Both the position numbers and the translations under genes were made by a program. The notes below the pieces were generated by a model. That model ran no database searches and was not told the DNA's origin. It saw nothing but the letters and a program-made list of their open reading frames with translations. A stretch of DNA of 63,148 nucleotides, the filler included, from Bigelowiella natans CCMP2755 (lineage: Eukaryota > Protista > Cercozoa): assembly GCA_000320545.1 (NCBI GenBank). It is 5 parts of 5 records of this genome, joined end to end, with 100 filler letters (N's around TTAATTAATTAA, not from the genome) between each part and the next. Parts side by side here need not be neighbours in the genome. Positions count along the whole stretch, not along the records: positions 1 to 29,231 come from ADNK01003351.1; 4 more parts are not named here. One strand, 5' to 3'. This document shows positions 2,248 through 43,519 of the stretch, piece by piece (positions within the stretch are counted from its first letter, which is position 1; the number at the start of each line of letters is the position of its first letter).

Positions 2248-5200
2248 TTATCTTGTCACATTTGTATTCACTTCCTTCTCATAAGCTCGCTCATACTTAT
2301 CAATCTTTTTTCTAGTGACTCTAATTTTGTGGATCGCACGATCTATTAGCTTTTTCGCGTTCGGTGCTTCTTTGGTGTATGGCTTACTCCTGATGTCGCG
2401 GGCTAATGCAAATATCTCTTCATCTTTAGCCTTAAAGAATTCCTTCCTCCGTGATAAGATGAGATACAGCGCCAGCCTGTATATGATCTTCTTTCCCTCC
2501 AAGAGGTAGATATCGAAAACACGTATGAAGAGCTCCTTTGGAAACTCGTAGAATCGCCCTTGGAACCATCGAAACGCGTAAATCACTGATGACACATTTC
2601 AATATGAATGATGCATTTCAATATGAATCAGTCATATAAGCTTTATATGCGCATGCATGCAAACAAATAGTAGTAGTAGTAGTAGTAGTAGTAGTAATAC
2701 CAGGATCGACTCCCTTTTCACCGAGCAAATTGGCTAGCTTTGGGTCTAATTTCCGCATTAGCCTGGTAAACACTTGCAATTGCCTGAGTAAGAATGCAAG
2801 CAATATGCATAATACATATTGATGAGAATGATGATGATGACGACGATGATGATATGCTCCTTCATATTATTCTTCATCTTCTTCTTCTTCTTTCTTTTCC
2901 TCTTCTCTGCCTTACTTCATAAGCTCTGGAAATCCTCTTTCATAGAGACCAGCACAAGAGTATTTGGGGTGGCTCATCAAACGATCCATGATAAAGAACG
3001 CTGTCTCTTCCGGAACATACGTCAACAACAGACTTGCCAAAGATCCCATGCCCTGGCAATATCTAAGAAGGAAGAAATAGATGATAGAGAAAACACAGAC
3101 AATATGTTAATACAACTCAAAAATCCCACAGGAAGTCTAAAGTAGTACAGTGATGAATGATGATTAATGCTGTCGTTTATTTCCTTCATTTGATCAGTTA
3201 TCATGACTCAACGTGTCACAGAATCTCCGTAATGATGAGGACATCGTTATCACACTACGTGTCGGGAGCAGCAGGCAGCCATCATTATTATCATCAAAAT
3301 GTTGTTCTTCACTTACCCAACTTTCGGATTGTATAGGCAGTATGCTTTGAGCACATTATAGAGGCTCTCTTGCCCAATACCTGATCGTAGTATGTGTGTG
3401 TGTGCGTGTGTGTGTAAAATAGACACATAAGGTAGTGATCATTAAACTTGTAATGAATGTATTGTATGCCGATTGTCGTCGTCGTCTTCGTGGTAACAAT
3501 ATGCTTGTTGTCCTCCTCCTTTGAGGAAAAGAACTATTCATCTAATGTAGCTCCTAACGTTAGTAGTAGAAGTAGTAGTAGTTGTAGTAGTAGCCATAGC
3601 GGCAGTACTGGTAGCGATGGTGGTGTTCTTATCTTATGATTATTACTACTACTACTATTAGTACCTTTATTGTAAAATATGACATTTCTCGGATCCGTTC
3701 GGTGTAAGTCCTTAGCGAGTTGTATCTCATCACCTTCTTTCAGATCCTTGCTCAGTAAGCTTTGATACAACCCTGGGGCCTTTTGCTGCACAATATCAGC
3801 GCCGCACAACCTAAAAATTGTGAGGGGGGGAAGGGAGGAATTCATCCTTGATTATTATCATTATCAGCATCATCCCACTCATTATCAAATTAAACAGACA
3901 AATACATGTAGTTATGTAATGCAGAGCACCATTTATCTCATCATCAAAATGGTGGAAGAGTTGGTGTATTTGTTAACTAAGACTCTTACGAACAACACAT
4001 ATAAGCATAAGCACGAACACACACACACACACATACACACATTCCAAACTTCCTCATTCGAATCTTACTTTGGCCAGATAGCCCCCCTCACTGCGTCGGC
4101 TATACCAGCACGGATTCGTTGCTTAATCTTACTGACTTTTTCAGGATCTTTATATTTTGACCATTTCCCTAACATCTCCGCCCACTTAATTTCCCACTTC
4201 AACTCGTCTTTCTCTAATGGCTCAGAATCAGCCTTTGCATTTGGATTTTCAGGATCATTTTGGTCACTGGCTGTAGAGTAAAGAGAAGAAGAAGAGGATG
4301 TTATTATAGTTGTTCAGACTAATGATGATGATGATAATGATGATGGTAATGATAAAATGAATTATTATGAGGCTAAGTGACGACAAACTCACTGCTGCAT
4401 ACTTAGTCGAATTACTACTATCATCATGCTCTGCACTCTATATCGTATGCACAATGTAATGCTACTACTACTACTATTACTATTACTATTACTACACACA
4501 AAAATCTTGCTAGTACCAGTCACAACAGCGAGTACTACTATTACTATTACTCTTACTACACACAAAAATCTTGCTAGTACCAGTCACAACAGTGCCCCAG
4601 CGATCTACTTTCAAGATTTTCTTTTCTACCACCTCAACCTGAGCTTTGATGTCATCTGCAACGCTACGTCGTCTAACGACATTAGGGTGTTCTTTGCTTT
4701 TGGTTTCCTTTGCTTCACTCCCCACTGGATGATGATGATCATCATCATCGCCTATTATTTCGTCTTGTCGTCCTCCAATTGCAGCGTTAGTAGTAGCATT
4801 ATTATTAGCCTTGGAGATGTTCAACTCCCCATCATCGCTTGGTTCCTCGCCATCTTCGACTGGCTTATGACTCTTCCTACTTTCAGCATCATCACCTTTG
4901 GCGATCATGCCTTTTTCATCAGTTCCGCTAGTGTCTGTATCCATAATCTTGCAATCCTTCTCCATGGCATCTCCCCCGTCACCAATATTCTTATTTCTTT
5001 CCCTGTCATCCCCCCTCCCCTGCTCCTGCTCTTTCTTAATACCCACGCTTTCTTTGCCTGGTTCTTCCTCGTTATTACTTCTGTCGAGTTTTGTCTTATC
5101 CGCACCATTATTTACTTCCTCCCCAGATTGACTATTACATGTATTCGGTTCCGCTATATTCTCTGTAGCTACTGCCTTATCGGCATCGTTGTAACCTAGT

Positions 5201-6332: not shown

Positions 6333-16636
<10,304 letters not shown>

Positions 16637-19701: not shown

Positions 19702-21390
19702 TCAATGTTTTTGCTTTTTGTTTGGAGGTTGGCCATCGAATTGTCGAGAATGATGCATTGATCCCATCTGATTGCTGTGTTGCATCATTCCTTGTTGGAA
19801 CTGCTGCTGCTGTGATGGATGATGGGACTGTTGGCTAGGATGATTCTGCATCATACTGCCCCCCCCGCTACTACTACCGTCACCCGAGATAGCTGGTTGT
19901 TGTTGCTGGTGATGGCTAATTCCTGCTGCTCCGCCGCCTCCTCCCCCTCCTATTCTCATGTTGTTCTGATTTGCCGTTCCACCGTGACTATTCATATGAC
20001 CAACTTGATGTTGTTGTTGTTGTTGTTGCTGCATCATTTGTAGCGTAACAGGCATCTGAATAAAAAGAATACAGCACCAATGTAGTAGTACTACCCATTA
20101 GGAATAATGATACCTTGATAGATGATGATGTAAAATGTTAGAGATCGAGATATAAACAACGCAGCAAAGAATTCACATTAATTATATTTAATTTCCATGT
20201 TGCTGCTTTATGTCGAATCATCTCCAAGTTAAATTTGCGGATTATTATTATTACAGGGACTGGAGATCCAACTTTGTAGTCTCTTTCCCCTCCTCCTCCA
20301 GCTCCCCCTCTCATTAAGCTGCTACTACGCTGGGGGGGGGGTGGCGGATGATGATGCTGCTGTTGCTGATGTGGAGATGGTAGTAGTTGTCCTCCTGGCT
20401 GATTATTCGACATCCTTCCACCATACATGTTGTGCATGGTTTGTTGTTGTTGTTGTTGTTGCTGCTGCTGCTGCTGTGATGGAGATGGATGATGATGTGC
20501 GGCAGTTGATGATGATGCTGTAGTAGTAGAGGATATAGATGGATGATGATCTCCACTGCCACCGTTAGCCAGATTACTGCCTCTCTGAATCTTGGAACAT
20601 ACAGTCAAACGAAAGGAGCAAGGAATGAATGAATGAATGAATGCATTCATGATGGCAGATAGACTGATGAATGGTGAATGAACAAACGAATGCATCCATG
20701 ATTCATGATGGCAGATAGACGACGAGGACCACGAACAATTGGTGAGTATTCGCCAAGACGATGTTCAATATAGTAAACATTATGACTGCTAATATACATT
20801 ATGCTACTTGATGGGAAATGGTTCAAACACATCCTCGTGTACTACCACGACATCTTGGAAATAGAAGGAACGAAAAAGGGGGGGGAGGTGGGGTTGGGAT
20901 CCTACAACTAATACTATTAGTACTAGTACTACTACAAGTACCTGCATTTGGGTTTGATCAAATTGATGCTGTTGCTGCTGCTGAATGCTGCTGCTGAATC
21001 CTGATGCCACCGCCTTTAGAGAATAATCAATTAATCATACAACACCACCACCATGCCAGTGAGGATAGTAAGGAGTATGGAACATCATGCATACATGTAT
21101 CCATGCATGCATGCATCAGGGAGAACACCTACTCTACAACTAACTACTTATCAACAACAGGTTATTAAGGTAGCAGTAGCAGTAGTAGTAGTAGTAGGAT
21201 AGCAGCTAAACATGATGATGATGATGATGATGATGATGATGGTAATTACCCCAACCAACCCCCCCCTTTGAAATGAATGATGAATCTGCTGCTGCTACAA
21301 CTTCTACTATTACTAACTAACTAACCTGCTGCTGCTGCTGTGGATTAAAGTTTGGATGCACCGAATAGTGGTGGTGTTGTTGCATATCCC

Positions 21391-23907: not shown

Positions 23908-23949
<42 letters not shown>

Positions 23950-26062
23950 TGGATTCAAAGGACAATATCAAGAGACAACAGTAATGTTGAATAAACCAAT
24001 GTTTATGCATGTGGTATGGTGTCCAATGTTGCTAGGAACAATGTTGTAGATAGTAATAACTATTTGTTCTTATTCTTGTTCCTCCTCTATAAGGCAGCAG
24101 TCCATTAGTAGGTAGGTAGGTAGGTACCTTTTTAATTGCTTCGCGTAGTTGATCTGGTTTCATCTTATCAACCATAATCCACAAGTGGTGTGGCATCCAC
24201 TTGGGACATTTGCCCTCTTTGCCATACCCAGGGTTTTTACCTTGGCAGAAACGCTGCATCAAAGAACGATAGATAGAACGAAGTTCATCTCTCGGTTTCT
24301 CCGCAAGTGGATCTTGCCCTTCCGGTACACATGGACGATCATAAAAGGTTTGTTGACACACTTTATCGAACTGTGATATATATACATATATTACGTGAGA
24401 AAATAATAGATGGATGATGGAACGATAGGCGACGCATGGGGGAATGAATGAAAACATGATTGCAAATTAGAAATGAATCATGAAACCAAAAACACAGCGG
24501 ATACTGGTTCGAATTGGTACTGTTGTTGGTTTTGATGATGATGATGATAATGATGATGATGATGATGATGTGGCGTACGTTTGATTTATTCGAGGACCAA
24601 TGGTTCAATCCATACGCATATGTCTTGACATGTTTCTTGTGACTAAATATAGTTGTAGTAGTAACATATAAGTCAAAAATAAATAACGGTTGCAAGTCAA
24701 ACTATAAATGAACTGTCTAAGGCTCTACTGCTACCAGTACTATTAAATCACCTGTGGAAAGCAATGAGTATCTTTGCATCGCACTTGACTTCCAACTCAC
24801 CTAAAATTGTGGTTCTTCTTATTACCTTATTCGACTCATAAGGATTCAGTGCCGTATATGACGATAGTGGTGGTGGTTGATGATTTTATACCAAGTTTTC
24901 TCATTATTGTCTGACGAAGAGTTGAGAATGTCGAAGCCCTTTAAAGGTGTTAGTTTATACTTCATTAATTCATTGATTCATAATGTGGATGGTATATAAT
25001 GGACCATTCGATACTCGGTAAGTAAATTGCGGTGGGTAGTGATGCAACGAGGTAGCTTGCCACTAACATCATCGGCCAACAAGGAGATAATATGATATGC
25101 ATTTTACGTGGTGACAATAATAACTGTTGTGTCTAGGGACTGATCACTCTGTCCGAATAATCTCCGGAAAGTATCCGAAGTTGTTGTTCGGATACTAAAT
25201 CAAACAAACTACACTTACTACCTCTTTGCATTATCTTGAATGTATTCGACCTTACGCTTGCCACGGGGTGCTAAATAAATATTAAACCAGTGAGATACCG
25301 CACGATCGTACTTACTTACTATCTGAAGCATCATCGTTATAATGCAAGAATTGTCGAAACGAGGAACATGATTCGTACCTCGATGGCCCTTTAAGCGCTT
25401 CAGACAGTCTATTTTATGCTGGTCCAAAGGTTCTTTACCATCCATGTTGTTAACCACACCCTCTTCATCATCATTGCCATCTACATTTGAGGCTGCCTGC
25501 TTTGGGGCGACACCAGATGATGACGATGATGATGACGTAGGAGGGGCTGCATTGTTAGCTTGTTTCGAATCATCCTGTGAGGAAAAAAGGACAGAATCGC
25601 AGCAGAGATCTCAATTTTAGGATCAACACTGACAGATGTGTATACATAAAAAAGGGTTGTATGTCATTTTGAAAAGCCAATTGAATCTATCAAGACCTTG
25701 CTTTCCTCCTTTTTTATTTTCTTTGTAGATTCCTCCTTTTCCTGACTTCCTATCGACCGGGATTTTGTATCATCATCGCCTCCTCCGGACTGCTGAGAAG
25801 CTTCAGTTAATGTGGTGGTGGTGCTTGGTGGAGGTTTGCCGGAGGGAGGGTCAGAAGATGCAGTGGAATTTGTGGATGCTCCTACAGCAGCAGCAGCAGC
25901 AGCAGCATTGGTTGGAGTTGTCTCCGTGGGTGCGGTAGTAGCTGCTGAAGGTGTTACTTCAGCCGTAGATACAGAGGACTCATTGGGAGAAGTCATATTC
26001 TGCTGCTGCTGCGAGGATGACGAGGCGGCCTCTGAGGATGTCGGCTGTGGGTTGCTGCTCAT
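19702..26062 (-). CDS. PolyQ transcription factor: SRF-like MADS box plus NRF1/EWG-like segment
   Basis: Phase-checked exons 25222-25270, 24892-24938, 24752-24800, 24579-24642 and 24128-24370 give APRGKRKVEYIQDNAKRASTFSTLRQTIMRKLGELEVKCDAKILIAFHSHKKHVKTYAYG...ELRSIYRSLMQRFCQGKNPGYGKEGKCPKWMPHHLWIMVDKMKPDQLREAIKK. Long Q/H/G-rich tail ends PPNKKQKH (NLS-like). Exon structure of the tail is only partly resolved. Confidence 0.8.
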
Positions 26063-41923: not shown

Positions 41924-42617
41924 GTATGCGTGTGTGTGTGTGATTACTGCGCCCTTTGCACTCATCAAACTACTGCTACCTCGATGCGAAGGAGCTCGTC
42001 GCGTTCCTTGGCATTCCAGATTCTTATGTCGTTGGAGCACGTTGCAAACAGCTCAGAGTAGCCAGCCTGCAATGAGCAGGATGATGATGAGAAAATCATG
42101 GAGAGACGAGTGGCACGGTGAACCAAGCTGCATCCCAATATTTTCCCAGGAAGTCAATGCACACGAATCAATCAAAAAGTGCACATTTGAGGTGCGTACC
42201 GGGAAAGAGATGTCGTTGATTGCGTTGTAGTTACACGTGGAGCGGAGCTCGTAGTCGAAGTCCTCAAGGGCCACCAGATAGGTCATACCGGTGGTTGTTC
42301 CAACGAAGAAGTGGTCTCCAGCTGCGTTGAGGGCGAGGGAGCTAGCACCCCCTTTTACCTTCAACTTCCTCACGACCTGCTCGATGGCAACAAGCACGAT
42401 GAGGCAGGGGGGGGGGGGGACGATGCGAAATTAAAAGATGTTGTAGTTTTGTCAAAGGTCTTCCTCGATTCGAGACCCTCTTTCCAGAAGCCTCCCCACC
42501 CACCCAAATAAGACGAAAAGGGTAAGCTTCCGACCTTCATCGTGGAACAGTTTATCATCGCCACGTGGCCGTCGCCAGCGCCAATAACGATGTGCCCGGG
42601 CATGAACTGCAACGTGG

Positions 42618-42658
<41 letters not shown>

Positions 42659-43519
42659 TTGAAAAAACACATCTATCAACGTAGCTGGAGTAAAACCGTA
42701 TCATATGCCATTCATATGTGTCTGTGATGTACGTGCGAGCGCGCGTGGATGCAAGAGTGCGGAAAGGAGTCACTCGGTGAGATCCACCACCCATCCACTA
42801 TCTTCCTTGCACCCGCCCCTAGCTTTACTCGGAGAAACGCACCTTTTCAGTCTTAATCATGGAGATGATGCCTCTGCCAAACAGATTTTTCTTCCTGTTG
42901 ACAGGCCCAGATGCCTTGAGCATCTTTGCCTCGATGTTCACCGCGAAAACGTCGCCAGAGGTCGTGCCTAGCCAAACCTGCGAGATGGAGCAATGGGTGG
43001 TGAGTGGCTGGTTGGATTTTGTGATCGAGAGCCCCGCACGGCAAATAGTCTAGCAAAGGCAGAGAGGAATGGAAAAGCTCATGACCGTGTTAGTGTCGAT
43101 GCTGGACTTGCAAGAGATAAAGTTTCTTCGTTCCTTTCCGAGCGAGATGTCGTGCGGGGTCAATTTACGCTGCGCGTAGTCGAAAGTCCAGATGCGCGCG
43201 TTGTTGTTCTTTCCGGCGGAGATGAGCATGTCGTTGCGACCTTCGATCCAACTGAGAGGAGGGGGAGCAGTATCAGGAGGAAGAACAGAGAATATATCCG
43301 CGCTCGTGGGCATTGTGTATGCGGCAAGCTGTGTATTCGGTAGTCAATACCTGACTGTCATCGTAGTTTGGTTGGCCGATGAGGCGCCACAAACGGCTTC
43401 ACCGGACTCAATGTCCCAGACGACGATGTTGTTGTCGTCACAGCCTCCTAGCGAAACTACGAATCTGTTAAAGGCGGTGGTGTTCAGGAAACACACAATG
43501 ATCGATCAATTCCACACGA

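Follow-up and report, generated by a model that had tools for sequence, protein, structure and literature searches.

A chlorarachniophyte MADS-box gene whose predicted product is built like the animal transcription factor NRF1

The DNA analyzed here (the window) is a stretch of 63,148 nucleotides, filler between its five parts included, from the genome of Bigelowiella natans CCMP2755 (GCA_000320545.1), and the contig of interest (C386) is one of 3,736 in an assembly of 91.4 Mb. Between 19.7 and 26.1 kb, the minus strand of the window carries what, to judge from its sequence, is an intact nuclear gene of this chlorarachniophyte (Rhizaria) encoding a transcription factor. The product is probably a dimeric factor built like the animal NRF1/EWG proteins, in which a MADS box precedes a DNA-binding domain (DBD) homologous to that of NRF1. 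An earlier note on this DNA had reported five phase-compatible exons encoding an SRF-type MADS box joined to an NRF1/EWG-like segment; the gene itself extends well beyond that stretch (25270-24128), from an ATG at 26062 to a stop codon near 19702.

In NRF1, a flexible linker joins a dimerization domain (residues 54-172) to a DBD (residues 201-284). The former combines helices with two strands, which assemble into a four-stranded intermolecular sheet; the latter has a long loop in addition to three helices and two 3-10 helices. The TGCGC half-site is read by R206, N242 and R244, and the dimerization domain contacts the DNA backbone only (Liu et al., PMC10810270). The same study described the resemblance of the dimerization domain to the MADS domain of SRF, at 16% identity, and concluded from phylogeny that there was "no apparent evolutionary relationship" between them (PMC10810270). 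Because NRF1 itself thus has a MADS-like dimerization domain ahead of its DBD, the window protein is not a new fusion. The two parts that the earlier note had combined are both present, but they are not otherwise separate modules, and the link it had drawn between MADS factors and the NRF1/EWG family, while plausible, is in part already published as the MADS-like domain within NRF1 (PMC10810270, PMC11868986). What the window protein offers is the NRF1 architecture with its MADS part still visible in the sequence, and its interest lies in this bridging position between MADS proteins and NRF1.

The MADS box

Membership in the MADS-box family is confirmed through the close orthologs of the window protein, P0001 (Amorphochlora amoebiformis; named 'MADS-box domain-containing protein' in UniRef), P0002 (a Chlorarachnion reptans MMETSP transcriptome protein) and P0003. 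Against Pfam SRF-TF (PF00319; 48 model positions, gathering cut-off 26 bits), these score 31.6, 31.2 and 30.9 bits, respectively, over all 48 positions, and the more distant P0007 and P0021 also exceed the cut-off over that span (29.9 and 30.3 bits). The scores belong to the orthologs: exons 3 to 5 of the window gene have 15 in-frame residues each, fewer than the 20 that the family scan requires, so that their assignment rests on near-identical orthologs, P0001 differing from the window at three residues within the 48-position stretch. Exon 6, too short for the purpose, gave no Pfam match when scanned alone. Searched against the PDB, a profile of the whole family retrieved SRF as the best match (E 3.7e-6), followed by MCM1 and many MEF2 chains, and the predicted fold consists of a long helix, two antiparallel strands and a short helix, as in the SRF core. 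A look-up in the ESM Atlas returned low-scoring SRF-TF clusters only. The SRF-type MADS box of the earlier note is thereby upheld.

The DNA-contacting Lys-Arg of the T-F-S-K-R motif, which we take to be K163 and R164 of SRF, is not kept; it is replaced by Thr-Leu in the window protein and by Asn-Leu in a second paralog type described below. HMMER alignment to PDB chain 1hbx places Thr-Leu directly opposite the SRF Lys-Arg, which bears out the exchange of SKR for STL noticed earlier. The arm Arg corresponding to SRF R143, N-terminal and directed to the minor groove, is retained. Compared with SRF, MCM1 and MEF2 (PDB 1srs, 1mnm and 1egw), the window family thus shares a full-length MADS box with its arm Arg, helix alpha-I, both strands and the short helix after them, and differs from them in the lost Lys-Arg pair and in having, after the MADS box, a second DNA-binding domain of NRF1 type that canonical MADS proteins do not possess.

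A predicted NRF1-like fold after the MADS box

AlphaFold2 models were made, templates off, from seven-sequence alignments. The model of P0021 shows two confident domains, with block-mean predicted local distance difference test (pLDDT) values of 64-91 over residues 21-170, and is built of helices at 24-49, 78-90, 105-119 and 150-171 and strands at 53-58 and 64-69. In a Foldseek search of the PDB, its top two matches were the two chains in 8k4l, a complex of the NRF1 homodimer with DNA (E 5.9e-5 and 1.5e-4 across 172-180 columns), the next ones, MEF2, SRF and MCM1, having E values of at least 0.01. Alignment of the family model to 8k4l_A pairs model residues 19-168 with chain residues 96-277. 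The model of window exon 7 (24370-24128, minus strand; 243 nt, 81 amino acids; pLDDT 78) likewise returned three NRF1 chains on top, with probabilities of 0.75-0.96 and template modeling (TM) scores of 0.51-0.58, and superposes on 8k3d with a root-mean-square deviation of 2.4 over 71 columns. NRF1 ranked first in four separate fold searches, which started from two models sharing 47% identity with each other; identity to NRF1 in the fold alignments is about 19-23%.

Exon 7 encodes a post-MADS helix, a short linker and the predicted NRF1-type DBD, laid out as a helix, a long loop with the motif GK.PGYGK...CP.WMP and the beginning of the next helix; as in the DBD of NRF1, the models show a helix, a long loop with short 3-10 helices, and further helices. 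The likeness to NRF1/EWG/P3A2 (PF10491; PDB 8k4l, 8k3d) extends to the order of the parts: a basic stretch, an alpha-beta-beta dimerization domain of MADS type, a linker and a small helical DBD, for which NRF1 is the best fold match in the PDB. The two systems also differ. The N-terminal domain is recognizable as a MADS box from sequence in the window family, whereas in NRF1 it is 16% identical to SRF; the linker measures about 15 residues against about 29 in NRF1; the conserved Trp and the helix after it stand about 11 residues closer together; and the protein comes from a rhizarian alga, not from an animal. The core DNA-binding domain of EIN3 (PDB 4zds) and the GTF2I repeat (PDB 2eje) ranked below NRF1 in every fold search; with them no sequence similarity was detected, and neither has a MADS-like partner domain.

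Sequence similarity to NRF1

At the level of sequence, NRF1 is approached by several weak matches. Searched with phmmer against all PDB sequences, exon 7 found NRF1 as its sole match (8k3d, E 0.82), with residue-for-residue alignment both in the loop motif and at the Leu-Arg of helix one. The motif common to both reads G-[KR]-x-P-G-[YW]-G-K-E-x-x-C-x-x-W-x-P. The same alignment, together with that to 1hbx, contains the NRF1 and SRF strings that the earlier note had given. A phmmer search with P0021 aligned its residues 17-146 with residues 42-192 of 8k4l_A (E 0.41). On Pfam Nrf1_DNA-bind (PF10491; gathering cut-off 23.5 bits), the MADS part of P0021 matches model positions 18-70 (19.5 bits, E 8.5e-4) and exon 7 matches positions 132-168 (12.9 bits, E 0.089); both matches are sub-threshold, but given these positions they are colinear on the profile.

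Of the three NRF1 residues that read the half-site, the equivalent of R206 is kept: the window Leu-Arg lies opposite that of NRF1 (Q-L-R-A-F), and this Arg occurs without exception in the seven family sequences. In the window protein N242 and R244 are replaced, the first by Met, where W-I-M aligns with W-A-N of NRF1, and the second by Asp, an equivalence extended from that alignment by eye. P0021 retains Asn at the N242 position and has Glu at that of R244.

Several results weigh against homology with NRF1. The sequence matches are all weak and, taken singly, non-significant, exon 7 staying below the Pfam cut-off; the six family members other than P0021 gave no match to Nrf1_DNA-bind; the whole-family profile that found SRF in the PDB did not retrieve NRF1; and an exhaustive phmmer search with exon 7 of 1.84 billion representative sequences returned no NRF1 protein. 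Of the two profile matches expected from the earlier note, that to SRF-TF was obtained (30.9-31.6 bits in the orthologs) and that to Nrf1_DNA-bind fell short; its NRF1-like segment is supported by the DBD of NRF1 ranking first in the structural searches and, in sequence, by sub-threshold matches. By the Pfam PF10491 threshold the window protein would be classed as a distant relative rather than as a member of the NRF1 family, one trait of which is binding to GCGCATGCGC as a homodimer.

The protein could, alternatively, be a divergent MADS-box factor with a lineage-specific helical C-terminal extension (compare MEF2, SAM and I/K) whose likeness to the NRF1 DBD arose by chance or convergence. 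We consider this unlikely. It does not readily account for NRF1 ranking first in searches from two such divergent models, for weak sequence matches of both domains landing on the same family at colinear profile positions, for the residue-for-residue alignment of the loop motif and the first-helix Leu-Arg, or for a domain order and a MADS-like N-terminal domain as in NRF1. Homology to NRF1, as suggested by the predicted structures and the sub-threshold sequence matches, is probable.

Gene structure

The window is eukaryotic DNA: its G+C content is about 41%, its GT..AG introns are short, and its coding parts contain homopolymeric runs. Exon 1 (26062-25697, minus strand as all that follow) is open from the ATG at 26062 to a GT donor and encodes 122 codons rich in Ser, Thr and Ala, with no Pfam match; its start is the least certain border of the gene model, since the N-termini of the orthologs vary. 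Exon 2 (25574-25379), with AG/GT borders, ends in the basic stretch CLKRLKGHR that precedes the MADS box, and its junction with exon 3 (CL.RLKGHR/APRG) is conserved in P0001-P0003. The MADS box is divided over four small exons. Exon 3 (25270-25222, 49 nt), with AG/GT borders and fitting phase, contributes the N-terminal arm and the start of the box; it is covered by a tblastn high-scoring segment pair (HSP) with P0007 (25271-25221) and also matches P0002, and 14 of its 17 residues agree with the transcriptome-derived orthologs. Exon 4 (24938-24892, 47 nt) holds helix alpha-I with the STL replacement and is 100% identical to residues 109-125 of P0001. Exon 5 (24800-24752, 49 nt) holds the end of alpha-I and strand beta-1 (100% identical to P0001 124-140), and exon 6 (24642-24579, 64 nt) strand beta-2 and the start of the post-MADS segment (95% identical to P0001 141-162). 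Exon 7, discussed above, is 89% identical to the transcriptome-derived orthologs. Exon 8 (23889-23686; AG/GT, phase 0) continues the last DBD helix (VEDVIRHEHNEKVPR) into a low-complexity region rich in Pro and Ala, and is matched by P0001 244-258 and P0003 278-326.

Farther downstream, exons with approximate borders (22572-19702) encode a domain-free region, as judged by a Pfam scan, that is rich in Gln, Gly, Met and Pro and ends in PPNKKQKH before the stop codon. They are matched in tblastn by P0001 298-488 (22377-21727) and P0001 477-570 (20040-19741); the motifs QQPR.DL.DS and SPS..LLSPNF are shared with P0002, and the C-terminal PPQKKQK tail with both P0001 and P0002. Introns 1-7 measure 91-283 nt each. 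A (GAT)n run (24534-24571) lies within intron 6 and a (GA)n microsatellite (23911-23945) within intron 7.

Every internal exon has AG just before it and GT just after it; the codons split between exons 3 to 7 fit one another (g/ca, ag/g, g/gt, ag/t). The five exons described in the earlier note thus hold in their borders and phases. Its end points coincide with the outer limits of exons 3 and 7, and both of the peptides it quoted are exact in-frame products; the distance between the two segments, which it had put at about 30 residues, is closer to 39 when measured from KTYAY to ELRSIY. tblastn of P0001 and P0002 against the window yields a single HSP per exon, colinear and gapless across all junctions. 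A spurious exon chain, or a pseudogene in decay, is highly improbable: every frame is open, every border is canonical, and exons 4-7 are 89-100% identical to expressed orthologs in two other genera. Since these orthologs align exon by exon, sequence comparison confirms the exon chain as real, far beyond chance.

Relatives in chlorarachniophytes

The exhaustive exon 7 search separated close orthologs (P0001-P0003, 85-90% identical to the exon) from distant relatives (P0005-P0007, 43-47%). P0004, P0008 and P0009 were rejected as relatives; they are repetitive phage-capsid or PKD proteins that matched in many short stretches. A word search with P0007 and a profile search with the family alignment gained only P0023 and P0024, and neither reached an NRF1 protein. 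The family seems very small, at about nine database clusters at 90% identity, every named one of which is from a chlorarachniophyte, and at the sensitivity reached it looks confined to chlorarachniophyte-like organisms. In the databases, the orthologs are labeled 'MADS-box domain-containing' or hypothetical, the second domain being unannotated.

A second paralog with both domains is present in the B. natans genome on another contig (C564, about 42550-43340, minus strand; loci L002, L006 and L007). Its SRF-TF match (35.5 bits) lies in one exon and is followed by the C-terminal domain (DELRSIYRSL, ELW..ERMKPDQLR). Its intron positions are unlike those of the window gene, and it is closest to the P0021/P0007 type. 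Assembly GCA_977009605.1 contains both paralog types as intronless genes. The ortholog P0016/P0003 (contig CDRMYP010002143.1, 3001-5163; L009) is called there as a single 720-residue open reading frame whose last approximately 160 residues are unlike those of the other orthologs, as if the frame had been read beyond its true end or an intron had been missed.

That the likeness to NRF1 reflects a recent horizontal transfer, from an opisthokont to the chlorarachniophyte ancestor or in the reverse direction, is very unlikely. Such a transfer would agree with a family found only in chlorarachniophyte-like sources and with the literature consulted, in which NRF1 relatives come from animals only (PMC10810270). 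The MADS part of the window family is, however, Pfam-significant and nearer to canonical MADS domains than is the dimerization domain of NRF1, with its 16% identity to SRF; a recent transfer from animals would predict the reverse. The existence of two paralog types that are old and differ in their intron positions, and an identity to NRF1 of only some 19-23%, speak against transfer as well.

When the whole assembly was searched in six frames with PF10491, a single weak match emerged (C1747, 26238-26441, minus strand; L001), which proved spurious, the locus reading as a C2-domain-like gene. Given that the window gene itself was missed, a blank in this search is a poor guide to NRF1-like genes in so intron-rich a genome. 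A MEF2-like MADS gene of canonical kind occurs in this genome too (C1278, 44248-44567, minus strand; L003 and L004), with the K-R-R of alpha-I kept; it is likewise broken up into short exons, and the intron between them contains a (CA)n microsatellite. Elsewhere in the window, positions 7559-16323 (plus strand) hold a multi-exon PEX1-like gene with PEX-1N (68 bits), AAA and AAA_lid_3 domains on separate exons and long low-complexity inserts, and positions 2248-2595 (minus strand) an exon that encodes the C-terminal portion of a domain matching RabGAP-TBC (34.6 bits).

Proposed mode of action and evolutionary implications

The window protein most likely works like NRF1. The MADS box and its basic arm (exons 3-6) would form an alpha-beta-beta dimerization platform through whose sheet two chains pair, followed by a short helix, a linker, the small helical DBD of exons 7 and 8, and the long region rich in Gln, Gly, Met and Pro, a presumed activation region. 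As the base-contacting Lys-Arg of SRF has given way to Thr-Leu, the MADS helix probably touches mainly the DNA backbone, as does the dimerization domain of NRF1. Each C-terminal domain may then place its first helix and its Gly/Pro/aromatic loop in the major groove to read one half-site, which is probably different from the TGCGC of NRF1 and not of GCGC type, since the window protein lacks counterparts of N242 and R244. The basic stretches ahead of the MADS box and at the C-terminal end presumably serve as nuclear localization signals.

The family supports a descent of NRF1 from MADS-box proteins. With an N-terminal domain that passes a curated MADS threshold and a C-terminal domain resembling the NRF1 DBD, in the same order, it provides a bridging sequence able to decide the kinship between NRF1 and MADS proteins. 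We tentatively suggest that it may be a surviving intermediate, NRF1/EWG having arisen from a MADS-box protein that gained a C-terminal DNA-binding domain, in an architecture older than the split between Rhizaria and opisthokonts whose MADS signal later eroded in animals. If so, the published disagreement on the evolutionary kinship of NRF1 and SRF would be settled, and NRF1 would be an ancient eukaryotic type of transcription factor rather than an animal one. NRF1-type factors would then extend beyond animals. With the Lys-Arg of SRF type already gone and the R206 equivalent fixed, the chlorarachniophyte family offers a natural test case of a MADS platform handing base recognition over to an appended domain.
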